64,000 nucleotides of DNA from Octopus sinensis (GCF_006345805.1 NW_021834402.1:3600-67599), one strand, 5' to 3'; counted from the first letter of the stretch, positions 1,524-60,832 are shown. Notes: generated by a model from the letters alone, not told the origin. Program-made: numbers and translations.

Positions 1524-1735
1524 GCGGATGAACTGGTAGAATCGTTAAGACGTCGCGCTTAGCGGCATTTCCTTCGTCTTTACGTTCAGAGTTCAAATTT
1601 CACCGAGGTCGATTTTGCCTTTCATCCATTTGGAGTCGATTGAATGAAAGTACCAACTGAACATTGAGGGGCGAGGGAAGTAGTCGACAAGCCTCCTAGC
1701 CCAACGTTTCAGGCCTTGTGCCTTTCATGGGAAGG
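1524..1735 (+). mobile_element. Degenerate SINE, older family B' (tail TTTCAGGCCTTGTGCC)
   Basis: Same head, B-box (GAGTTCAAAT) and GCCTTTCATCC core as family B, but a different tail and higher divergence. Confidence 0.65.
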
Positions 1736-8555: not shown

Positions 8556-9135
8556 AGATATATATATATATATATATATATACTATATTATATATATATA
8601 TATATGCGTGGTGTGTATGTGTGTGTGTTATGTATCTTAAACGACCATACTACATACATTGTGCTATTAAACAACATAACAATAGCACTACCTGTAATAT
8701 GATATGAACAACGGAAGGCATAACACATTCAGTAATGTTGGTTTAATATTCATGATGTTGCTCTTGATAGTATATTTCTGGTCAATAGACGGGATTGACA
8801 TGTTCGAGACATATTTCATTATAAATCTGCAGGAATAAATTTAATCTGGGGCAAAGAAACCCCAGCCATCGTAACAAAAAATACCATTAGCGAGACAATC
8901 AAATAAGAACATCTTAAAAGAAAGGAAGGACACTTTAGATAATGTTGTCTTAAAATATATTGTTTCAAATCATCAGAGCAGAACCTCTTTTATCAAAGAT
9001 CTGTTCGACACGACATGAGGTTTAACAACGACGACGAAAATCATGTCATGAGGTTTAGCAACGCCACCACCAACGACAACACCGCTTAATTCTGTTGCTT
9101 AGTTTTCATTCGTGGTTAATTCTGTTTCATACTAT

Positions 9136-10411
9136 CTATTTCTTTACTACCCACAAGGGTAGTAAATACAGAGGGGGGACAAACAAGGACAGACAAACGG
9201 ATTAAGTCGATTACATCGACCCCAGTGCGTAGCTGGCACTTAATTTATCGACCCCGAAAGGATGAAAGGCAAAGTCGACCTCGGCGGAATTTGAACTCAG
9301 AATTTAACGGCAGACGAAATACCTATTTCTTTACTACCCACAAGGGGTTAAACACAAAGGGGACAAACAAGGACAGAAAAACGGATTAAGTCGATTACAT
9401 CGATCCCATACGTTATGTACTTAATTTATCGCCCCGAAGGATGAAAGGCAAGTCGACCTCGGCGGCATTTGAACTGAGAACGTAACGCAGAGAAATACCT
9501 ATTTCTTACTACCCACAAGGGGCAAACACAGAGGGGGCACAACAAGGACAGACAACGGATTAATCGATTACATCGACCCCAGTGTTAGCTGGTACTTAAT
9601 TTATCGACCCCGAAAGGATGAAGGCAAAGTCGACCTTGGAGGATTTGAACTCAGAACGTAACGCAGAGGAAATACCTATTTCTTTACTACCCACAAGGGG
9701 CTAAACACAGAGGGGGCACAAACAAGGACAGACAACGGATTAAGTCGATTACATCGACCAGTGCGAGCTGGCACTTAATTTATCGACCCCGAAAGGATGA
9801 AAGGCAAGTCGACCTCGGCGGAATTGAACTCAGAATTTAACGGCAGACGAAATACCTATTTCTTTACTACCCACAAGGGGTTAAACACAAAGGGGACAAA
9901 CAAGGACAGAAAAACGGATTAAGTCGATTACATCGATCCCAGTACGTAGATGGTACTTAATTTATCGACCCCGAAAGGATGAAAGGCAAAGTCGACCTCG
10001 GCGGAATTTGAACTGAGAACGTAACGGCAGAGGAAATACCTATTTCTTTACTACCCACAAGGGGCTAAACACAGAGGGGGCACAAACAAGGACAGACAAA
10101 CGGATTAAGTCGATTACATCGACCCCAGTGCGTAGCTGGTACTTAATTTATCGACCCCGAAAGGATGAAAGGCAAAGTCGACCTTGGAGGAATTTGAACT
10201 CAGAACGTAACGGCAGAGGAAATACCTATTTCTTTACTACCCACAAGGGGCTAAACACAGAGGGGGCACAAACAAGGACAGACAAACGGATTAAGTCGGT
10301 TACATCGACCCCAGTGTGTAGCTGGTACTTAATTTATCGACCCCGAAAGGATGAAAGGCAAAGTCGACCTTGGAGGAATTTGAACTCAGAACATAACGGC
10401 AGACGAAATAC
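9136..10411 (-). repeat. Tandem array of 7 headless SINE-B bodies (~175-187 bp each)
   Basis: Units at about 9136-9322, 9323-9498, 9499-9675, 9676-9855, 9856-10039, 10040-10225 and 10226-10411. Every junction reads ...GCAGA(C/G)GAAATAC|CTATTTC on the plus strand. Confidence 0.92.
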
Positions 10412-10658
10412 GAATTTCTTTATTGCCCACCGGGGGCCAAACATAGATATGGACAGTACAACTGATGGGATCAGTGAATCGATATGATTTTACATAATGT
10501 GACATCAAAAATAAAATACAATACATAAAATCGAATGGAATACACAGTACAAAAACAATACAAATGAAGCGATGATCAAGTTACGCTCCGATCCCACAAG
10601 CCCCGATCTACCGCTGATACCTTTTTATTTTTCCTTTTTTTTTTTTTTCCTCGTCTAT

Positions 10659-13600
10659 TCACACGGTTCCTTGCACGCACAACACTCGTGCAACATACTT
10701 CCATCTCTTTTGGAACGTACACTCTGACAGACACCTCTTCTCCAGCCACAGTTTCCTTTTCAAATGAAAAGAAAAAAAGGATCGTAAATTGTCACCAGAG
10801 ATAAAGTTGCCTGTCTTAATTCCTTTTATCCTAGTATTCCATACAGCCTCTTTTGCTATTGCTACAACCGTGAGAAAACAATTCTTACCTTCGTTCGTTA
10901 GAACTCCCGGTGGGTCAATTTTTATAATTGACTCAGTCGACAGCCGTACTCTTCCTTCGCCGGACAACAGATGTTCAGCATAAGCCCACATTTCAGTTAT
11001 CTCCGGACACTGAACAATAGCGTGAGGGACGGTTTCCCTGTCCCCACCGCATCTTGGACAGGTCGGCGACTGACGTTTACCATGTCTTGCGAGCTTATCC
11101 CAAACGGGCAAGGCACCTCTGTAGCATTGCCAGGTAAGGACTTTGGAAGTTGTCCAACGTTCTCAACCCGAATGTACGATGAAACAAGCTGTCCAGTTGA
11201 ATAAATCCGAGACCTAGAGTCGACCCCAGGCCATCGTCGCATTCAGACTCTACCAACCCACTATATAAAATCCGTGTGGAACCCCCACCGCTGGCGTTGC
11301 CCGAGCGCCGGAACAGCAAGAGGGCCTTACGGCACTCTTTATGCCACTCACTCGACCTCGGTCTACGAGAACACCAGGCTTCCTGTTCGCAAAAACTCTT
11401 GAACTCAGGGAACATTTGTCTGGCCAGCGGAGACCACACCCGTTCACTATCCAGGAGAATCCAGAGGTGCCTCAACCTCAACGCATGTCTGCGCATCATT
11501 AACCAAGGCATCCCTAAACCTCCATTTAAAGGCTTTTGACAGCAGACAGAGCGTTTCACAAGTGGCGACCTGCCCTTCCACAAAAAGCGAAAGAGCTGTC
11601 TCTCCAACCTGATCAACCACGAATCCGGACAGGGCACGACAGTCAGGCGGTAGGTAATGACCGATGCGATAAACACATTGGCCACTTCCGCCCTCCCTTT
11701 CAGGGATAGCCACCGCCAAGACCAAGTCTTGACTACTGCAGCCACCCTGCTCAATACCTCCGTCCAGTTCTTCTCTATCTGGAGGCCTGGTCCAAACCAG
11801 ACTCCCAGCAACTTAACCGGTCCCTCCGTCCAGCGCCTAACAACACTGTCTGAAGGCATCGACTTGCCAACCCAGGTGCCGAGCTGCAAGCCGACCGACT
11901 TTTCCCGGTTAATCTTTGCTCCTGCTACCTCCTCGTAAGCCTCAATAGTCTTACCTACTTCACGTAGGCGTACCACTGTGGTTACACTGATAGTGATATC
12001 ATCCGCGAAAGCCGTAACAACTCCTCTAGTCCTGGTTCTCTCGGGATGCCACTCAACCTTTGCAGTAATGGCTCGAGAGCCATCACATACAAAAGTGGTG
12101 AAAGCGGACATCCTTGACGAACCGAGCGTCTGATGCAGAACGGCTTCGAAAGGAAACCGTTCACCGAACTATCGAGTCAATGTTGTGGTACAAAGCGATA
12201 AACCACCTGAGGAAGCCAAGGCCCAGGCCAAACCGCGCAAGTACAGTCGCTAGGTATCGATGGTCAACCCTATCAAAAGCTTTAGACTGGTCCAAATGCA
12301 CCAATGCCCCACCTTTGCCAGATTTATTACCAAACCTCTCTATGGTATAGCGAATAAGATGGAGGGTATCCTGAATGGTTCTGCCTGGGATGGCACATGT
12401 CTGTGCCTCCCCGACTATACCATTCGCGACACGCGCCAACCTTTTTGCTAGAACCTTGGCCAAAATCTTCACTTCTGCGTTTAACAGAGTGATGGGCCTG
12501 AAATTCTCTAGAACGTCCCCCTTGTCCGGGTCCTTTCTGACCAACGTCACTACTCCCCGGCGCACAGATCTGGGGATAAACCCATTCTGTTTCCAGTTCG
12601 CGTACACGTCAGTCAGTAGTTGCCCGAACAAGTCTGGCTACATTAACAGCTCGTAAGCTCGTACGGAAGACCATCAAGTCCCGGTGACTTACCCGCTTTA
12701 CAATCGGCCAAAGCCTCCATCACCTCCTCAAGTGTGATTGGCCCTTCGCAAGACTCCGCATCCGACCCCGAGAGGCACGGCAGCCCGGTAAGAAAGTCCT
12801 CGAGGGCTCTCCCACCACCAGGACCGCCGTCACCCCCGAACAGCTGGGCGAAGTACTCCCGAAAGACCTCACACATTTTCTCGGGTTCGTTTATCAAGAC
12901 ACCATTTTGATTCGTCAAAGACCGAATAGAGGAACTATTTCCTTGCCGAGCTTCCACCACTCGGGCCCATCCAGCGGCTTTGATTCCTTCACTTCCCATT
13001 GCACGTAACTTAGCTCTGGTAATACTTCCCATGTGGTGGGCTTCAAGATGCTGGTTTAACTCCAGTCTTTTCACCCTCGCTTGGTCTGTATTACCAGTCC
13101 TCCAGGCTTCTTCTAGTTCCTTAACTAGACCATCTCCTATTTTACGTCCCTTCTTAGCTAAACTTATGCTAAACCTAATAGACTCATATTTGATGGCTCT
13201 TTTTAGGGCGTACCACCATTTGTTATTAATGATGGTACCTGTTAATGCCCTCTGTATTAACATCTTGATCCGCTTTCTGTACTCCTCAATCGCCAAAAGG
13301 GACGTATTGAGTTTCCAGTAGCCAGATCCCTGTCTATGCAACTTATCTACCGTCAGTTTACAGGTAACCATCTTGTGGTCACTGTAGCTGACTAGAAAAA
13401 ACTGTGGACACTCAACTATGGACTTATCTTTTTCTCTAATTAAAATCCTATCTAGATATGTTCTGGTAGACCCGTCACTATTTGACCACGTCCACTGTGG
13501 AGTGTTCGGGTGCTCCAACCTATATGGATCTGCTAGCTGAAATTGACTTAGCAGATCCCGAAAGCCTGTGTTACATTTTCTGTTCATGTTCGAGTTTGAG

Positions 13601-14059
13601 CCAACACAATCTGTGTGTGCTGCACATATTGTATTAGAGTCTCCTAACACTACTAGTGAATGCGACGTGGCTAGGAACTTTCCTAGGCCACGAAAATATT
13701 CAGTTTGCGGGCCAATAATGTTTGGTGCATAAATAGCGACCAGCCTGATTGTCTTGCCACAACTGAATGTCAAGTCGAGAACGACCAGCCTGCCTTCTGG
13801 GTCAGAAAAACCAACTTTTTCTCGGCTACCCGTTTTCTTTTTAGTAGGACCAACACCCCACCCCCACCTCCCGCCCGACTCGGAGAAACGTATTTCTCGT
13901 AGCCGTTCAGGAGGGGGAGCAGATCTCTTGGCCCCTTCACCCGGTTTCCGTTGCAACAATTACATCCAAATTTCTCGACCTGATGTCATTCAGAAAGCGT
14001 CCTTGCTTCCAGCTTGACAACAGGCCATGAACATTTAAACAACCAATGTGAATAGCCAT
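10659..14059 (-). pseudogene. LINE ORF2: APE endonuclease, reverse transcriptase and zf-RVT-like C-terminus, split by about 6 frameshifts
   Basis: Joining frames gives MAIHIGCLNVHG...ATET...YAPN...GDSN...YLDRILI...SDHKMV...YWKLNTSLL (APE); [56 protein letters not shown] (RT); CPRCGGDRETVPHAIVQCP (zinc-binding C-terminus). About 1130 codons in total. Confidence 0.9.
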
Positions 14060-14070
14060 CACTTACCTGT

Positions 14071-15588
14071 TTAATTAGGATTGTCCGGTGGAGGGGGACC
14101 CTCCACCTTTTTTTTATCCAGGGTCGGAGGTGGACGGTCTTGGGAAATAGATTTGTCAAAATCCCGTCTCACCACCGACACAGAATTATCAGGTGGAGGG
14201 GGAATCTCCACCTTTTCCTTTTCTCGCGGATCGGAGCTGGTAATCCATGAAATATCGACTTGTTAAAATCTAATCTCAATGAAGAGTCTTTCTGTACTTA
14301 TTTTGTAGAATTCTATAAGTCTTATTTGAGACTTCATATATGTCGTAATTGATAAATTCCTCTGAAAGGTTATCAATTTTTTTTACAGTCTTTATGAGTT
14401 GAATGTCTCTCATGAGCTCAGTATCTTTAGTGTATACGGCTATTATGCCTTTTTCTTCTTTTTCTCTTCTGGCAGTCTTTTTTGGTCGTTGTTCTGTAGT
14501 ATCGCCGCTCTCGCTGGGTTGCTGGCTTGTATTTTTCTTTTGTTTGTTGTTTTTTTCTCATCTGTTTCTTCTTTATCTTCTTCCTCTTTGTCTTTTTTCT
14601 CCTCTTCCTCCTCTTCTTCATTTTCCTTGCAGTTCCTTCGAATGTGGCCTAATTGACCACATAAAAAACATCGAGGTTTTCGGCCCTCAACAAACACCAC
14701 GAGGTTCTCCTCCCCTACCTCAATTGTCTCAGGAATTGTTTGAATTATTTTAGGGTCCGCTTGAATGAGAAGATTATTGTTTTACCATCCCAGCGTGGGT
14801 TTTCCGTAGCGGTAGCCTGGAGGAGAGTATTTTTTTCTACCTCTTTGATTAGGACTGCCGCCAACAACCACATAGGTTCGACCTCTGGCGGGACCCTTGT
14901 AATTTTTATTCGCGACGTCCTCATCCCCATATAATAGGGTATTAACTCCACGTCGTTCGTTTTCAACGTTTCCACTGAGTTCTTGTGTGCTATTTCTTTA
15001 TTGGTGAACCTTACTTCCACCGTTCCGAATTTTTTTCCTCTTCTCAGAATACTACGTCGCCCAATATTGGCTTTAAGCACTTTTCTATTTTCTCTTCTGA
15101 CATTCTTTCAATTTTTTATTTTGTAGACAATATGTTTTGAAAATTATTGTTTTTTGCTTTTCTTCCTGTAATAACTTTTGCGGAGGTTCAATTTTCACAC
15201 TGTTGTCATTTATTTCCATCATTTTGCTGTATTTCATAATTTCGCTTTTATTCGTCGACAGTATCTGGGTTCCACCCCCAGCAGCCAACGCAAAACTTTT
15301 TTTCCATTTTTTGGTTCTATCTGGATGCTAGGCACATCAATTATTCTCTTCGACACAATGCCTTTGTTCTCTGGCAAAGTCGGAAACTCTTCTGGTGAAA
15401 GTTCTGACGAGCTCTCAGACACATCTCCAAAAATATCAAATATATTATCTCTCTGCTATTCCTTCTTGTAGCGGGGGAAACCCCTATTTCCTTGTCTGTA
15501 GTTGGCTCCTCGCCGGACATGTATTTCCTCCTCTCAACAGGAGAAAAAGTATTTCTGCTCCAACGGTAGGCTCCATGCTAGACGACAT
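14071..15588 (-). pseudogene. LINE ORF1 (gag-like, one CCHC zinc knuckle), frameshifted
   Basis: Pieces 15234-15422, 15085-15288, 14745-15080 and 14443-14700 (CFLCGQLGHIRRNC = CX2CX4HX4C, followed by an acidic/basic tract), plus a C-terminal ...KVEGPPPPDNPN* ending at 14071. The start codon (15588 or 15520) is uncertain. Confidence 0.75.
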
Positions 15589-15752
15589 TCTTCCCCCCAA
15601 AGGGGGAATGAACAACGCGTGCTACCACAAGCACTAAGTGTTTTCAATTGAAAACTCCAACAGTTAAGTTATTCAACAGTTTAACAAGAAACAACAGTTG
15701 TTAACAATATTAACACCACGAAACAGCAATTCTTACTTCACGAACACATGCG

Positions 15753-15814
15753 CGGCAGACGAAATACGGCTAAGCATTTCGCCCGGTGTGCTAACGTTTC
15801 TGCCAGCTCGCCGC
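15753..15814 (-). mobile_element. 5' head of the SINE-B copy interrupted by the LINE
   Basis: Reverse complement GCGGCGAGCTGGCAGAAACGTTAGCACACCGGGCGAAATGCTTAGCCGTATTTCGTCTGCCG. The outer direct repeat TCTGTTTCAT lies at 15815-15824 and 9121-9130. Confidence 0.9.
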
Positions 15815-15944
15815 TCTGTTTCATTATATGGACAACCCCAACCAATCTTTCATGAAAGTTTCAAGATTTATTTTTGTGTCAAAATAGCCGAGTAAAAATA
15901 ATTGCTTAAAACGACAAGAAAGGAAAAAGGTACATATCCATTGT

Positions 15945-16092
15945 GCTGAAAGAGTACAGCAGGGTTCGCACCCACACTCTGTCGGAGCCTCGTGGAGCTT
16001 TAGGTGTTTTCGCTCAAGAGACACTCACAAAGCCCGGCCTGGGAATCGAAACCGCGATCCTACGACCGCGAGTCCGCTGTCCCTAACCACTG
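15945..16092 (-). mobile_element. SINE family C, 5' part
   Basis: Homologous to the head and core of the complete copy at 36258-36641. Confidence 0.75.
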
Positions 16093-16508
16093 TTTTATGT
16101 GTGTGTGTGTGTTAGTTCTGCTAAATATTACTATACACACAGACACACGCTTAAAATTGTCTTCCAATCAATGCGTAGGTTTTTTGCTAGATTTCAGGTG
16201 AGAACACAATGAGCTGCAAGACTCCACGGTTCTCAATAATATGAATAGAAAGTATGAAAAAGAGAAAGTGACTTAACGTAAATGTATGGGGAGAGGGGAC
16301 AGGTGAACGTGTGTGTATTTCTGTGAGTATATTTGCACTTATAGGGATGTGTAAGTACATCAATCTATATGATGGATATACGTCTACACCTATATATACT
16401 TTTATATATATATGCTTGTATTTATACATGCGTATATGCATTCAAGCATACAACATATATCGTATGACGACGATGAGATGAGAAAGAAAAAAAGAATAAG
16501 AGGGAGAC

Positions 16509-24274: not shown

Positions 24275-25453
24275 CAGGGAGTCCCAAAAATATTGATATC
24301 ATTTCGGAGTTAATAACATAGCTAGTCCTCACTCAAATAGTCTCAAATTTTAACAAAATGTGTAAAAACTAACTTTGGATCGGGCATTCCAGTGATAATG
24401 ACAAGGTGCTGTTGAAATGATTATCACGTTCACTTGACTTGAGATTTTGTGATTTTTCTTCTATGGGGCTATGTCAAAGGATTGGTCCATATCCCCATAT
24501 TTTCCTACAAGCCTAGAGGAACTCACAAAGAGAATCCCCGAAGTGCTGGAGAAAGTTACGCAAGACCTGCAACAGCGTATCTATTTCTTTACTACCCGCA
24601 AGGGGCTAAACACAAAGAAGACAAACAAGGACAGACAAACCGATTAAGTCGATTATATCGACCTCAGTGCGTAACTGGTATTTAATTTATCGACCCCGAA
24701 AGGATGAAAGGCACAGTCGACCTCAGCGGAATTTGAACTCAGAACGTAGCGGTAGATGAAATACCAATTTCTTTACTACCCACAGGGGCTAAACACAGAG
24801 AGCGCAAACAAGGACAGACTAACATCGACCCCAGTGCGTAACTAGTATTTAATTTATCGACCCCGAAAGGATGAAAGACAAAGTCGACCTCGGCGGAATT
24901 TGAACTTAACGGCAGAACTTAACGGCAGACGAAATACGGCTACGCATTTCGCCACCGGCGTGCTAACGTTTCTGCCAGTTCGCCGCCTTTTCTTTTTTTT
25001 TCTTCTCAGACAAATGCCTCAAAGACAGCAATGTAAAAAAAGTTGTCAGAACTTCGAAAGCACAAAAGCTGCACCACGAAGAGAACAACAGATCTTCAGA
25101 ATCGTGAATGTCATCACCGAAATCCTGCGTATCTGGCAGGAGTTAAACTACCGGCTTACAGAGAATCTCCGAAGCGCTGGAGAAAGTTACGCAAGGCCTG
25201 CAAAAGCGTATCTGGCAAAGTTGGACTGCCGACTTGACGTGTGTCATGTCACAGGCGGTGCATTTATCGAACATTTATGAAGCCTTGTGAAACCGGTTAT
25301 AAAAATCTACATCCCTTTGGATCACCTGTTCGAATTTTGATAAATAATTCTACTATTGTTCAACATGAAGCCAACCTGATCTCGTTTGAGTAAGCTTTGT
25401 AGTTACTCAGATATTCACATTTCAAACGATGTCAATAATAGGGGATCACCCTG
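24275..25453 (+). mobile_element. Tc1/mariner-superfamily DNA transposon relic
   Basis: Degenerate TIRs TA|CAGGGAGTCCC...TATTGATATC and GATGTCAATA...GGGGATCACCCTG|TA. Peptide remnants ...FLLWGYVK... and ...RIWQELNYRL...LDCRLDVCHVTGGAFIEHL* resemble Tc1/mariner transposase C-termini. Confidence 0.7.
24582..24987 (-). mobile_element. SINE-B dimer (head + body + body) inside the transposon relic
   Basis: Internal junction at 24764/24765 (plus strand ...GTAGATGAAATAC|CAATTTCTTTAC), the same position as in the 9.1-10.4 kb array. Confidence 0.85.
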
Positions 25454-35671: not shown

Positions 35672-36086
35672 GGCGGTGAGCTGGCGGAATCGTTAGCACG
35701 CCGGGCGAAATGCTAAACGGTATTTCGCTTGCCGCTACGTTCTGAGTTCAAATTCCGCCGAGGTCGACTTGGCATTTCATCCTTTCGGAGTCGATTAAAT
35801 GGGTACGAGTTACGCACTGGGGTCGATATAATCGACTTAATCCGTTCGTCTGTCCTTGTTTGTTCCCTCTGTGTTTAGACCCTTGTGGGTAGTAAAGAAA
35901 TAGGTATTTCATCTGCCGTTACGTTCTGATTTCAAATTCCGCCGAGGTCGAATTTGCCTTTCATCTTTTCGGGGTCGATAAATTAAGTACCAGTCACGCA
36001 CTGGGGTCGATGTAATCAACTTAATCCGTTTGTCTGTCCTTGTTTGTCCCCTCTATGTTTAGCCACTTGTGGGCAATAAAGAAATA
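35672..36086 (+). mobile_element. SINE-B dimer (head + body + body)
   Basis: Junction AAAGAAATA|G-GTATTTCATCTGCCG at about 35903. Outer near-identical TSD AAACATT(C)TTTTAAG at 35658-35672 and 36090-36103. Confidence 0.9.
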
Positions 36087-41353: not shown

Positions 41354-41930
41354 GCGAGGTGGCAGAATCGCTGGGACGCCAGGCGAAATGCTCAGCGGTA
41401 TTTCGTCTGCCGTTACGTTCTGAGTTCAAATTCCGCTGAGGTCGACTTTGCCTCTCATCTTTTCGGGGTCGATAAAATAAGTACCAGTTACGCACTGGGG
41501 TCGATATAATCGACTTATTCCGTTTGTCTGTCCTTGTTTGTTCCCTCTGTGTTTAGCCCCTTGTGTGTAGTATAGAAATAGGTATCTCGTTCTGAGTTCA
41601 AATTCCGCTAAGGTTGACTCTGCCTTTCATCCTTTCGGGGTCGATAAATTAAGTATCAGTTGAGTACTGGGATCGATGTAATCAACTTGCCACTTCCGCT
41701 AAAGTTTCAGGCCTTGTGCCTATAGTAGAAAAGAATCGTTAGTACGCTGGTCATATACTTTGCGGCATGTCATCCGTTTTTACGTTCTGTATTAAAATTC
41801 CGCCGAGGACTGCTTTGTGTTTCATCTTTCGAGGTCGATAAATTAAGTACCAGTTGAGCACTGAAGTCACTGTAATCGACTTATCCCCTCCTGCGAAATT
41901 ACTAGCTTTGTGTCAAAAATTTGAGACCAC
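41354..41930 (+). mobile_element. SINE-B body nested in an older B' SINE (41354-41733), followed by another B' copy
   Basis: Junction AGAAATA|GGTATCTCGTTCTGAG at 41580/41581. The downstream unit ends in the B' tail TTTCAGGCCTTGTGCCTATAGTAGAAA. Confidence 0.75.
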
Positions 41931-45309: not shown

Positions 45310-45540
45310 GGCGGCGAGCTGGCAGAATCGTTAGCACGCCGGGCGAAATGCATAGGCGTATTTCGTCTGCCGTTACGTTCTGAGTTCAAATTCCACCGAC
45401 GTCGACTTTGCTTTTCATCCTTTCGAGGTCGATAAATTAAGTACCAGTTACGCACTGGGGTCGATATAATCGACTTATTCCGTTTGTCTGTCCTTGTTTG
45501 TTCCCTCTGTGTTTAGCCCCTTGTGTGTAGAAAAGAAATA
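45310..45540 (+). mobile_element. SINE-B monomer inserted in a SINE-A fragment (about 45240-45650, minus)
   Basis: Perfect 17-bp TSD TATTCTATCGTTCTTTT at 45289-45305 and 45541-45557. Confidence 0.9.
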
Positions 45541-49060: not shown

Positions 49061-49586
49061 ATGAAGAATAATACTTGGAAAGAAAGACCAGTTAAGAACG
49101 CTTAGTGTAGATGTACTTGCATTTCCACACATGACTTCGATTTTTTTATTTTTTGTAGACATTTTTTTCTTACAATTAAAGTTTCATAAATAACATATTT
49201 TCATATATAATATATATTACATATAATTTATATACATTCGTTTGGTTTCTTTTGAAACGTCTATAAATGCGGTAGTCGTAGGTTTTATTCTGATTTGGCG
49301 AACTGGCAGAATCGTTAGCACGCCGGACGAAATACTAAGCAACATTTAGTCCGTGTTCACTATCTGAGTTCAAATTTCGCCCAGGTCGACTATGACTTTC
49401 ATCCTTTGGCGATCGATAAAATAAGAACCGGTTGAGTACCGGGGTCGATGTAATCGACATACTACCTCCCACAAAATACTGCAAAAATCTGTGCCAAAAT
49501 CTGACCAAATTATTTACAGACAAAAAATCACGATGCTTGTCTTCATAACGCATCTGCCAGTCTTACGATTTCAGGAAGTTTAACTA

Positions 49587-49985: not shown

Positions 49986-51644
49986 TGAGACGATATTAAC
50001 TCATTAACTGCCAAATTGCTTCACATGTACTTTTCTGGCTTTGCCAGGTGTTTTTGAAGTTAAAACAATATATAATATTTAAATTCTCTTCATATATGAA
50101 TTATTTTGGAAATTAACAATTTTTTCGAAAAGTCCCAAATGAAAATCGCTGAAAAAAAAGCATATATATTCTTTTCTGTTCAATTTCAAAAATAAATATT
50201 TTAGTTTCTTTGAGACTATAATACCAAATATGAATGTGTATGAAATATCAGTGAATGATATAGATGGGAAATGGAAAATATTTTTTAAATTTTTCATAAT
50301 ACTCAATATGTTTTTAGTTTTAAAATTGCGATTTATGACATAAAATGTCTTCTAGAATTAGCCAGAGCTCACAATCTTTTCTATTATATGCACAAGACCC
50401 GAAGTTTTGTGGGGAAGTGGTCCTGTCGATTAGATCGACGCCAGTACGCTATTGGTATTTAATTTAACGGCACTGAAAGAGTGAAAGGCAAAGTCGACTT
50501 CGGCGGAATTTGAATTCAGAGCTAATAATGACAAAATTTAACTACTAAATAATGTTAAACACACCTCTGCAAATGCAATGTGTATAAGGTATTCACTTCA
50601 TATACAACGGACAATCGACAGGGAAGACTGGATTTAGCAGATCCCCAAACAGGACTTATGGCAAGCAATGGCTTAATAGAAAAAACAGAAACGAAGGAAT
50701 TCTTGAGTGTTACGTAAGGATGAACAGACATTGACTTTTTTTTACATAAATGAAACAATATGGCGAAGCTACACAAATGTATGCCTCTCAGTAGGAGTAT
50801 CATTTTATTTTTCACGTGTACTCTTTTTTTTGGCTTTAGTCATTTAGCTGCGGCCATGCTGGGGCACTGCTTTGAAGGCTGTTTAGTCGAAGAAGTCAAC
50901 ACTACGATTTATTCTATTTTTCAAACCTGGTACTTATCCTATCGGTCATTTTTACTGAACGACTAAATTACGGAGACGTAATATATCTTCAACATCTCGC
51001 TCCCTCAAAAGATCTGATCTTACGCCTAAATGAGAAGACATTATTAATATTAATAGTTTAATATACACGTTTGAAACAGCATTGGAAGGGAATACCAGTT
51101 TTCAAAACAGTAATGAACCACCGCATACGTTGTTTCGACTTAATTTCGTCTTCTCAGTGACGAATATTGTACACTTCCTGATCTTAGAAGAGAAGCGATG
51201 TTTCATATATAGAAATCGGTATAGAAAATATTCATTAAATTGTACGAAAGCTATCGAAGCTAGAAGTATACTAAATATATAAATATACGTATGTATCTTT
51301 CTAAAAGTTTTTCTACAAAAACAGCTCTTGATTGAACAAAAGAATTGTTTGCATAGAAGCTGTAATAGGTTGTACGCATACAGACACACATATTTACATA
51401 CATGCATATATACATACTTTCACACACATACACACACACACATGTATACACATACACACATATTATTAATAAGATACGGAAGGCAGAAGATATGAGAGTC
51501 TTCATTGATCTACAATCGTTCTACAATCGTTTCGATCCATCAAGCATTGCTTACACGCGGAAATACACCTAAACAACCTGTACCATATTTCATCCCGATG
51601 GATCAATGCTAAATATATATATATATACATATATATCAACTGAA

Positions 51645-54577: not shown

Positions 54578-56778
54578 GATAATGGTTTTCTATAGCTAAT
54601 CTGTTTCTTTATGTTCCGAATTGAAATACCAACAAGCGCCACATTGAACCCCATCCTTCCGGAGACCGAAGCAATACAGTACTGGGGTCAGTGAACGAGA
54701 TTAACCTTTGTTACTTAATTGCTGACTTTATTCCTTATTTAGAAATAATTATCATTAATGTTAAGGTGTCAAGCTTGGCGAATCATTGTAATGACGTCCG
54801 AAATTCTTGGAGGTTTTTTTCCGTTATTTCCTTCTTAGTCCAAATTCCTCTGAGGTCGACTTTACATTTATTTTCTCAGGGTCGATAAAATAAAGACCAG
54901 TTGATCACTGCGGTCCGTATAATTGACTGAACACCATCCACGAAATTTAGGGATTTTTCAAAAAGTGAGTTGGTAGTTTTGGAGAAAGCGTTAGTGGACA
55001 TTTTTCTAGCTCTTAATATTTTGATTTCAAATCCTGCCGAGATCATCTTTTCTTTTTATCCCTCTGGTTTCAACAACCCTATCAGTTAAGCAATTTGCTA
55101 CTAATTCCTAAAGTATCATTATGTTCTGCATGCACTCGTTCAATACCCGAACATTGCGAACTTGTAACTTTACGTTTAACTCCTGCTGACGCATGTAGGA
55201 CGCATTCGGCAATCGATTGAATCTAATGTGAAAATCGTCCCATCAATTCCTTTGTCCAGGAAGGACAGGCAATGTTTATCTACCTAGCGTACTTCGTTTG
55301 TCGTATTTCTCACATCAGTAAATAAACTAATTATCAGTCAAATGAATTATTCCCAATTGAGAAATCATTATCAATTTCTTATTTTCATTGCACGATTCCT
55401 GCGTAGCTTAAAGTGGCGCTATGTTGGCCTTTACTATATCTAGTATCTTCTTGTGGTTTTGTATTTTCTCATGTACTAGAAATATTCCGTTTAATGTGCA
55501 ACGTGCAGCAATGCTATTTTCTCCGTCATGCATATCAGGAAATCACGTGACATTTGTCACGCAACTGCTTGCATGCATTTTTTCTAACCATTCCCGAAGC
55601 TTCTCTAATTATGGTGATTGTTTGTCTCTTAGATGCCACTTCCTGGCTAGTTCTCTCTTTACCTAACTTTTTACCATTTATTTCAGAATATTTTTACTTA
55701 TTTGCTTTCGTTCTTCATTATCGGCTGTTTAAACTGATATTTCATTTACGTCCTCTATTTCTATTGCTATACCCTAGGCTATGATCTGGTTATCGTTCTC
55801 TCTGACCTTTTCTGGCGAAGATTTAGATCAACATTTTTTCCGTTGGTACTACATAATCAGCATCACTATAAGTTCCTCCTGTACTTTGGAGTACGTTGGT
55901 CAGCAAGGTCACACTACTAGAATTCATTGGTTGCAGTTTTCTATACATTCCATCACGTGATATAGGCCTCCCTTGTATCGGTTATAAATGTTCTGGGCGA
56001 GGAACACGTTGCTCTTCCTCCCTTTATTTTTCCCACTGGTGGTGCCTGTTTGGAAGCTGTTCTAGAATGGGGCTGTTTCTGGTAACTGAAGTATGAGATC
56101 TGTTTGTTGTAAACTTTCTTCTTGCTATTGTTTTGATTTCCGCTTTCTTTTGAATGTCTTTCGAAAGACCACATAACTGATGTGCTACGTGGTTTTGCCC
56201 CTACGTTCGAATCATTTTCAAGCACATTTGGGGAATACATCTAGCATTCTCTCGATGTTTGCGTTGTTCAAGTAACAAATAGCGCGCATTCTACCTCTCC
56301 TCTCTATATAGTCTCTCTTGCCCAAGACAGGGAAAGCACAGATTTTTAAGATAAAAAAAGCCTTTATTAATTAACCAACACTAAAACTTCAAACGCAAAT
56401 GCAGTTTGCCTTTTTGCTTAGATACACAAAGCACTGAAGTCATAAATATATCATTTCCTCTGCGCTTGGTAAGAGTTAAGAAGAATATGAGGGGCAATTT
56501 CTGAAGGCTTCGTTTCGTAAACAGAAGAGAAACCCATTATCGATGTATTTTGCAAATGGACGCACTTACTTAGCCACATATCGTGTGATGTAACAATTTC
56601 CTATGTCCAGATTCTTATTTTTCATATAGGATAAAATAGAGCTACATGCGAAAAACAGCCTTCTCTGATACATACATACACACATGCATTCACACACATA
56701 TACATACATATATATGTGTGTGTGTGTTTGTGTGTGAACGTGTGCGTGTGCGTATGTGTGTGTGTGTGTGTGTGGTGT

Positions 56779-59914: not shown

Positions 59915-60100
59915 TAATAATAATAATAAACATTTCTATTATAGGCACAAGGTACGAAATTTGGGGGAGGGGGTCAGACGATTAGATCGGTCCCAGTACG
60001 CAGCTGGTACTTAATTTATCGACTCCGAAAGGATTAATGCCAAAGTGGACACTGGCGCAGTTTGACCACAACCACCAACACCAACAACAGAAACAACAAC

Positions 60101-60153
<53 letters not shown>

Positions 60154-60832
60154 TTTCAAATTTTGGCACAAGGCCAGCAGTTTGGGGGGGGTTAATTCGG
60201 TTGCATATTGAGGGAGGGATAAATCGATTATATTGTCCCTCCCCCCAGTGTTAAACTTAGTACTTATTTTATCGGCCTTGCAAGGATGAAATGGGAAGTT
60301 GACCTCGGAGGAATTTGAACTCAGTACAGAAAGCCGGACGAAATGCTGCTAAGTATTTAGCCCGACCCGTTGATGGTTTCAAAGTTCGTTAGAAACCCAG
60401 CATATTTTAAAGATGAATGACGAAAGTCTGTTATAGCAACCGAAGTAGTTGACTAGTACTTTAATGTACCAATCCCGAAAGGATGAACGATAAAGTAAGA
60501 CACAATATAATTTGAAAACAGAACGTAAAGGGGTCGATAAAATGACGGAAGGACCTCAGTATGTTAATGTTGTCTACGCGTCTGCATTTGTATGTGCACG
60601 TCTACGCAAGATCTCCTTAAGGACGACTGACAGCTACACAATAAAAAAGAAAAGAAAAAGGAAAACATTGTTCCATCTTGCTACGATTTTGTTTCGTCCC
60701 ATCGTCATTGCGGGCGTTGTTGTTCGGCGCCCTATAATTTATTATTCTTTAGCCAATATATTACTATTATATTACGTGCGCTGCTACGTAAAAATAACGC
60801 CATAAGTTGACGGATATGAAAAATAATATATC

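Follow-up and report, generated by a model that had tools for sequence, protein, structure and literature searches.

In the octopus Octopus sinensis, a long interspersed nuclear element (LINE) of the L1/Tx1 group inserts, in the great majority of its copies, at a single nucleotide position of the short interspersed nuclear element (SINE) that appears to be its own partner. The arrangement was recognized on the minus strand of a 64,000-nucleotide (nt) stretch of DNA (GCF_006345805.1, NW_021834402.1:3600-67599; hereafter the window), which is contig C10873 in the assembly that we searched. Reading from position 15824 down to 9121, the locus consists of a 10-bp repeat, a SINE head, a sequence T, the LINE, T again, seven SINE bodies each led by T, and the 10-bp repeat once more; an earlier note made from the window alone had described this layout, and all of its coordinates hold (Table 1). 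We use T for the 15-nt sequence GTATTTCGTCTGCCG and S for the C or G base directly 5' of it. In our judgment it is very probable that an old SINE carrying its own 10-bp duplication was hit at one nucleotide by SINE copies and then by its young partner LINE.

Our searches covered a 2.72-Gb assembly of 13,516 contigs. We fetched 39 full-length LINE copies with their flanks, chosen by 100% identity to the first 153 nt of the element (shared by at least 40 copies), and 38 of them had a SINE head and T upstream and T and a SINE body downstream, the orientation of the LINE always being that of the SINE. A LINE-specific 3' 29-mer occurred at least 136 times in the genome. The earlier note had predicted an excess of (C/G)GTATTTCGTCTG flanks, and this was borne out at both ends: allowing up to two mismatches, the motif followed 82 of the 85 LINE 3' ends found with an exact 22-nt anchor among the matches listed, and nearly all of the ~105 LINE 5' ends were flanked in the same way. 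With the 5'-end pattern we obtained 112 matches, compared with 4 for the reversed pattern as a control, and (C/G)GTATTT...CGC(A/G) preceded 94 of 100 such ends among the matches listed. There are ~7e4 exact T sites in the 2.72 Gb, and a random insertion would strike one with a probability of ~3e-5. Random LINE flanks and SINE junctions scattered along the unit, the outcomes named in the earlier note as speaking against it, were sought across the assembly and neither was seen. As in other sequence-specific retrotransposons, one insertion site and one orientation are common to the great majority of independent copies, and the first-strand junction of the LINE lies at one SINE position, directly before or after the C/G base preceding GTATTTCGTCTGCCG.

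The site specificity was equal in full-length copies and in copies without a detectable 5' end. Among the matches listed, T flanked 27 of the 28 LINE 3' ends that had no 5' end within 8 kb. Six of the eight candidate short copies that were fetched ran past 1.4 kb and were 92-99.5% identical to the window copy, the truly short 5'-truncated copies being only two (L049 and L051). Some older relatives, 92-95% identical to the window copy, were likewise at T, and targeting of T is therefore not a new habit. The LINE discriminates between T sites by what precedes them. A SINE tail rather than a head precedes 26 of the 100 exact T sites among the matches listed, yet such tail-T junctions host only 3 of the ~105 full-length LINEs against the 26% expected, and head positions -8 to -1 were canonical in 30 of 34 LINE-flanking heads compared with 35 of 74 genomic heads (p = 4e-5). 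The LINE needs this head context either because recognition reaches upstream of the nick or because those bases travel with the LINE.

Two sets of copies depart from the usual flanks. L012 (G000:C8:57065600-57072500), the sole copy of the 39 without a downstream SINE body, continues as GGTATTAAGCTGGCCG..., with only GGTATT of the site, and has head and T upstream; either part of the target was deleted, or 5' transduction carried the head to a GTATT site off target. Four LINE 3' ends (G000:C6:72657968, C7:41260038, C7:61841927 and C7:70733301) adjoin a variant site, GGTATTGCGTCTG, which probably marks a SINE subfamily whose T has G as its sixth base, showing tolerance at this position.

The SINE bears the same signature as the LINE. 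Their last 34 nt are identical at 30 positions (score 48 against a shuffled maximum of 20), making the 3' tail of the SINE homologous to the LINE 3' end in the stringent sense used for LINE-SINE partnerships, and such a shared tail reads as the classical sign of a SINE using that LINE's machinery. The window holds ~8 T-bearing SINE loci, three of them multimers, and at every internal junction SINE position 48 follows a tail. A search of the whole genome for an exact 16-nt SINE tail, under the condition of a purine 19 nt downstream, gave 54,677 occurrences, and T followed 71 of the first 100 along contig 1, or ~55% after correction for the search filter. The earlier claims that the LINE breakpoint is the nucleotide of the SINE-SINE junctions, and that the SINE has the site preference of the LINE and piles up in its own copies, agree with these results: the two elements use one junction nucleotide and one off-target core, the SINE being less strict. 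That the target is a tRNA-like (transfer RNA) region found no support, as a full SINE copy gave no Rfam tRNA match at E <= 1 and ARAGORN made no call on the window; a B-box-like GAGTTCAAATTCC is visible by eye only, downstream of T.

The off-target core was seen in insertions of both elements. Flanks of 29 SINE tails not followed by T read N-R(28/29)-T(26)-A(25)-T(20)-T(14), and off-target duplications of LINE and SINE alike begin with (N)RTATT. The RTATT core lay inside duplicated target DNA at L037 (GGTATTCATGAACTG), L026 (ATGTATTGTG), window position 45311 (TATTCTATCGTTCTTTT) and L051. The last of these, a LINE fragment of 130 bp outside any SINE, has a 16-bp duplication, GATATTAAAATTTTGT, exactly as long as T with its C/G base; together with the core, this duplication places the first nick at the C/G base and the second ~16 nt downstream. 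We also observed that the junction GAAATAG/GTATTTC is a near-palindrome (GAAATA..TATTTC) at window positions 10210-10232 and at every SINE-SINE junction. At the nick, the bottom strand therefore resembles the 3' tail of the element itself, which may be a coincidence or may reflect one protein surface that recognizes a single word in both RNA and DNA.

The T upstream of the LINE has a different history from the T downstream. It carries T at T position 13 in 15 of the 39 copies, a variant never found in the downstream T and tracking internal LINE haplotypes, and variants with CAGCTG and TTTAG recur in several copies in the upstream T only, while variants private to the downstream T, among them the TTTTG of four copies, were never copied upstream. 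A simple 15-16-bp target-site duplication was rejected as a general rule on the basis of the upstream-only variants and the uncopied TTTTG, and the upstream T in most copies seems, from these variants, to behave mostly as part of the LINE. The duplicated T of the earlier note is exact at both window positions, but the upstream T is no clean duplication, its variants being linked to LINE lineages. As to the C/G base, all members of LINE lineages I and II have C, while C and G are both found with one near-identical haplotype, and the association of the base with internal LINE variants is marginal (p = 0.015-0.08). This pattern, the identity of the base on both sides of the LINE and the prevalence of G at SINE-SINE junctions suggest that the last RNA base must pair with the nicked DNA end, in which case homology would contribute beside the endonuclease.

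We propose a mechanism of target-primed insertion in which the endonuclease of the second open reading frame (ORF2) would nick the bottom strand at the target, its recognition probably reaching 8-10 nt back into the end of the SINE head, since the LINE avoids tail-T junctions. Reverse transcription would be primed on the shared tail, the top strand would be cut ~16 nt downstream, and the 5' end would be joined by pairing of the new complementary DNA (cDNA) with homologous target rather than blindly. The LINE RNA would start with a T-like sequence of its own, with crossover anywhere in T, so that the upstream T would usually show LINE-lineage variants. In the SINE, cDNA of T and head would pair with the resident head and T, each event adding one head-less T-body unit and successive events thereby building arrays, in which unequal exchange may later duplicate blocks of units, as in the window. 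We lean, with some reserve, towards a further step in which the two elements form a closed loop, a "safe harbour": one nucleotide of its own SINE would be essentially the only niche of the LINE, with a recognition site of ~24 bp, the arrays would extend themselves, and the system would be active now.

Several observations weigh against this account. Our pattern samples were defined by exact anchors, and old or diverged copies are under-sampled. For specificity residing in the ORF2 endonuclease the evidence is indirect, consisting of the RTATT core inside off-target duplications. Two copies, L005 and L001, alone carry one private variant in both T copies, and the upstream T is sometimes target-derived. 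The C/G base is the same on both sides of the LINE in 38 of 38 copies, and at SINE-SINE junctions it is G in 23 of 26 cases although C and G are equally frequent in heads (34 each); a plain model of nick plus duplication does not predict this pattern. Some 45% of SINE tails lie away from T, the SINE being either less strict than the LINE or moved by other LINEs too. Finally, about half of the sampled multi-unit arrays show rare variants common to neighbours, and these, together with a block duplication in the window, mean that DNA-level amplification inflates the junction counts.

Alternatively, specificity may come mainly from homology between RNA and target and not from the endonuclease. LINE and SINE transcripts of copies resident in SINEs would bear SINE sequence on either side, namely T with some of the head on the 5' side and the C/G base, perhaps with some of T, on the 3' side, and these ends would anneal to whichever SINE was nicked at that point. 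This explanation follows a proposal for the R1 and R2 elements specific to ribosomal DNA (rDNA), and we rank it as the main rival or as a complement. It would account for upstream-T variants that are recurrent or linked to LINE lineages, for the unusually clean proximal head next to the LINE and for the C-type of LINE lineages I and II against SINE junctions that are almost all G. The AATAAA lies 6 nt before the LINE end, and cleavage would therefore fall inside T; off-target SINE tails carry the graded prefixes GG, GGT, GGTA, GGTAT and GGTATT; and co-transcription with the target has been cited as strengthening specific integration (Kojima 2015). On the other hand, RTATT is found within duplicated target DNA at off-target sites and not only in the element, so that the nick itself prefers the core, copies without a 5' end are equally specific, and either base is seen with a single, near-identical LINE haplotype. 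As the main source of specificity, homology is possible but on balance unlikely, and it is best viewed as a contributor on top of a sequence-preferring nick.

A second alternative concerns the arrays, which might be ordinary SINE-derived satellites produced by unequal crossing-over or slippage, with a LINE that prefers them or persists in them and no self-targeting by the SINE. DNA-level amplification does occur. Tandem Repeats Finder reported a 186-bp unit in 7.2 copies at 9136-10447, and according to BLAST every unit of the window array begins with the first base of T, which is SINE position 48 (T matching within two mismatches in five of the seven units, with 1-bp deletions in u5 and u6). 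Only 1-2 substitutions separate the members of the pairs u2/u5, u3/u6 and u4/u7, against 6-13 between the three types, and this pairwise near-identity points to a duplicated block of three units (u2-u4 and u5-u7), arisen at the DNA level or by assembly, rather than to seven separate events. The seven T-led bodies of the earlier note are therefore there, all starting at position 48, as 3-4 distinct units plus a duplicated block. The duplicated block, the neighbours with common rare variants (e.g., C1:7400078-7400444 and C1:8970274-8971765), the existence of arrays of 65-67-bp head-plus-T units and the ascription of squamate SINE-derived satellites to unequal recombination (PMC10702118) all fit a satellite origin. 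However, unrelated loci share one junction nucleotide, which is the start site of LINE reverse transcription, and unequal exchange among dispersed SINEs would not fix a single tail-to-T junction. Many dimers and trimers are also of mixed subfamilies (e.g., C1:226451/226635/226823 and window positions 24581-24986 and 35673-36086), and the LINEs lie mostly in single SINEs beside the head, not in long arrays. Near-identical neighbouring blocks, the mark of SINE-derived satellites, account for only part of the arrays; amplification adds to the fixed junction but cannot create it, and a purely satellite origin appears quite improbable.

T followed by a complete head, the expected product of a full-length insertion joined without homology, was found 44 times genome-wide, mostly within a few of the 65-67-bp head-plus-T arrays. 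These arrays (T, AA or GAAA, then GGCGGCGAGCTGGCAG...; G000:C1:195358953-195359242, G000:C3430:1381-2210 and G000:C18:40399013-40399172) mirror the T-body arrays and are rare. SINE-core fragments, 72-89% identical, lie at window positions 1557-1658, 41588-41883, 49297-49461, 50425-50520, 54799-54931 and 59976-60364. They match within SINE positions 3-168, mostly ~66-167, most have no T and all have no tail, which suggests other SINE families with a common core domain and a different target site.

The insertion of the LINE into resident SINEs follows from a comparison of divergences. Between loci, LINE-adjacent heads differ by 14.9% and bodies by 14.1% on average pairwise, against 0.3% for the 3' 150 nt of the LINE and 0.6% for the whole element; the heads flanking the LINE carry private substitutions, and the outer flanks and outer duplications are specific to each locus. 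With the flanks at 14-15% and the LINE at 0.3-0.6%, the LINE is a recent arrival that entered old, independently inserted SINE copies. That head, LINE and body instead form one composite element with SINE-derived ends, or a segmental duplicate moving together, is hardly credible: both flanks are constant in 38 of 39 copies, a single 10-bp repeat encloses the entire 6.7 kb in the window, and L049 can be read as read-through co-mobilization, but the model is rejected by the divergences and private head substitutions just given, by a downstream unit number that ranges from 1 to 7 and by the locus-specific outer sequences. L049 itself (G000:C4:59149300-59150830) is a 200-bp LINE 3' fragment followed by T and a SINE body, with no head or T upstream, and may represent a read-through transcript of LINE end and downstream SINE body that was mobilized from the SINE tail, not an insertion at T.

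Both reading frames of the window LINE copy are broken, with 11 substitutions and 21 indel events relative to an intact genomic copy. The copies L001-L039 differ from the intact copy by 2-24 indels and 2-47 substitutions, the indels being about as numerous, and single-base deletions cluster in array units u4-u6 (9323-9855); part of the frame damage may therefore be long-read assembly error, and broken frames in single copies are not to be taken at face value. The intact ORF1 encodes 509 aa with one zf-CCHC at 308-324 (E = 8.5e-5) and gave no Transposase_22 match even at E = 10. The intact ORF2 contains Exo_endo_phos (an endonuclease of the apurinic/apyrimidinic endonuclease, or APE, type; E = 2.3e-10), RVT_1 (3.5e-29) and zf-RVT (2.3e-7), and its nearest relative of solved structure is human L1 ORF2p (E = 1.9e-64, residues 5-867). 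An N-terminal APE-type endonuclease, a reverse transcriptase and a C-terminal CCHC motif in ORF2, with a separate upstream ORF1 that has a CCHC knuckle and not Transposase_22, are the hallmarks of the L1/Tx1 group of APE-type non-LTR (long terminal repeat) retrotransposons, to which the domain content clearly assigns the predicted proteins. A CCHC knuckle in ORF1 is a trait of Tx1 and of plant-type L1 elements. Placement in Tx1 or in L1 by three-way similarity was uninformative, as octopus ORF2 scored 221 bits with human L1 ORF2p while a zebrafish protein named "transposon TX1 149 kDa" by NCBI scored 309 bits with octopus ORF2 and 290 with human L1 ORF2p. The "Tx1-like" label of the earlier note is correct at the level of the L1/Tx1 group by ORF2 domains, but by similarity score Tx1 and L1 are not told apart; the O. 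vulgaris annotation names only "L1-Tx1".

The low pairwise distances and the intact copies indicate that the LINE family is young. Its closest named protein match is from Argonauta hians, with 58% identity in ORF2, and the exact octopus ORF2 protein had no record elsewhere. The Argonauta relative (L042, BAAFZT010000001.1:9782835-9794847) keeps a similar 3' tail (GGCTAATAAAGAAAT, GGCTAAGAAAGAAATTT and GGCTAATAAAGAAATC, at positions ~7290 and ~7640), and the tail is therefore older than the octopus family. This is one degraded copy, it does not adjoin a T-like site, and we draw no inference from it on specificity outside octopus.

In the window, T with up to two mismatches occurs 16 times against 0.06 expected. 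The 10-mer TCTGTTTCAT (ATGAAACAGA on the minus strand) occurs three times against 0.34 expected, two of the copies being the exact outer limits of the composite, and this outer duplication is the mark of the original SINE insertion. Directly upstream of the locus, at 15960-16100 on the minus strand, lies another repeat of SINE-like form, which has a tRNA-type B box (GGTTTCGATTCCC) and is unrelated to the T-bearing SINE.

Table 1. Components of the LINE-SINE locus, in minus-strand order; positions are those of the window.
Feature	Position	Strand	Remark
Outer target-site duplication, upstream copy, ATGAAACAGA	15815..15824	-	Exact 10-mer; adjoins SINE head
SINE head, 47 nt, GCGGCGAGCTGGCAGAAACG...GCTTAGCC	15768..15814	-	BLAST to SINE model positions 1-62, 98%; last base, 15768, is C, the S position
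T, upstream copy (GTATTTCGTCTGCCG), then CG, then CATGTGTTCG (LINE 5' end)	15753..15767	-	Exact
L1/Tx1-group LINE, 5,341 bp, starts CGCATGTGTTCG, ends GGGCAATAAAGAAATTC	10412..15752	-	Base 10412 (C) is the S position at the downstream T
ORF1 remnant	14071..15588	-	Intact homologue 509 aa, one CCHC zinc knuckle
ORF2 remnant	10659..14059	-	Intact homologue 1,133 aa: APE, reverse transcriptase, C-terminal zf-RVT (CCHC)
LINE 3' tail common to SINE, TCTATGTTTGGCCCCCGGTGGGCAATAAAGAAATT	10413..10447	-	AATAAA inside, no poly(A)
T, downstream copy	10397..10411	-	Exact; resident target, with which array unit u1 starts
Seven head-less SINE units (T + body + tail), ending AAAGAAATAG	9136..10411	-	176-187 bp each
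Unit u1	10226..10411	-	
Unit u2	10040..10225	-	
Unit u3	9856..10039	-	
Unit u4	9676..9855	-	
Unit u5	9499..9675	-	
Unit u6	9323..9498	-	
Unit u7	9136..9322	-	
Outer target-site duplication, downstream copy, ATGAAACAGA	9121..9130	-	After filler ATAGT, 9131-9135

In octopus genomes SINEs account for about one tenth of the sequence, and a role has been invoked for them in genome rearrangement and in brain transcriptomes. If roughly half of the copies in a major SINE family land in older ones, SINE counts and age landscapes need to be read again, as do reports of SINE enrichment near genes. The system is a natural case of a parasite's parasite serving as a safe harbour for its own host element, which bears on the coexistence of LINEs and SINEs, and the loop, if true, means that the LINE, via its SINE, provides itself with landing sites in the tens of thousands, all of them harmless. 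An APE-type LINE that is active at present, recognizes a long and precise site and leaves clean junctions would also stand beside R2 as a system in which to study site-specific target-primed reverse transcription and possibly to make use of it.

R2 has a restriction-like endonuclease and a ribozyme, and its target is a host gene. As in R2, R1 and the short internally deleted elements (SIDEs) derived from R2, target sequence carried by the octopus transcript would aid precise junctions and a non-autonomous derivative uses the same site; unlike R2, the endonuclease is of the APE type and the target is selfish DNA. No ribozyme was seen in the octopus LINE, and no search for one was made. Among Tx1-clade elements, Mutsu is said to insert in 5S rDNA and Dewa in the spacers of tRNA arrays, reportedly described by Kojima and Fujiwara in 2004. 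Other sequence-specific members of the clade are Tx1L in Tx1D of Xenopus, Keno in U2 small nuclear RNA genes and Kibi and Koshi in microsatellites (PMC4494074). Like all of these, the octopus element is an APE-type LINE with ORF1 and ORF2 that occupies one sequence in a multicopy target, but their targets are never their own non-autonomous partner, and the octopus LINE is assigned to the L1/Tx1 group only. Squamate SINE-derived satellites are tandem arrays of SINE parts to which unequal recombination contributes (Vassetzky et al. 2023, PMC10702118). The block duplication in the octopus array is of the same kind; the unit boundary, in contrast, is one fixed nucleotide, the integration site of the partner LINE, and this argues that reverse transcription generates the arrays.

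The closest described system is that of the crocodilian Tx1-Mar LINEs and SINEU-3, which have a common preference for one site in Mariner-N4_AMi (Kojima 2015, PMC4494074); the tandem SINEs there sandwich a duplicated target, and the common preference was used to infer the mobilizer (PMC4494074). Both systems pair a LINE, of the Tx1 type in crocodilians and of the L1/Tx1 group in octopus, with a SINE at one target site in an abundant transposon. The crocodilian target is a third-party DNA transposon, whereas the octopus target is the partner SINE itself; no shared 3' tail was found for SINEU-1, whereas the octopus LINE and SINE share theirs; and the octopus system differs further in its head-less products and in a young family (0.6% divergence) with intact copies. 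Papers on octopus repeats that were searched in full text, Repbase reports apart, describe "L1-Tx1" families and abundant SINEs and contain no site specificity, partner assignment or array mechanism. New here are the use of the partner SINE as target, the self-extending head-less arrays, the tens of thousands of junctions and the young, intact LINE family behind them.

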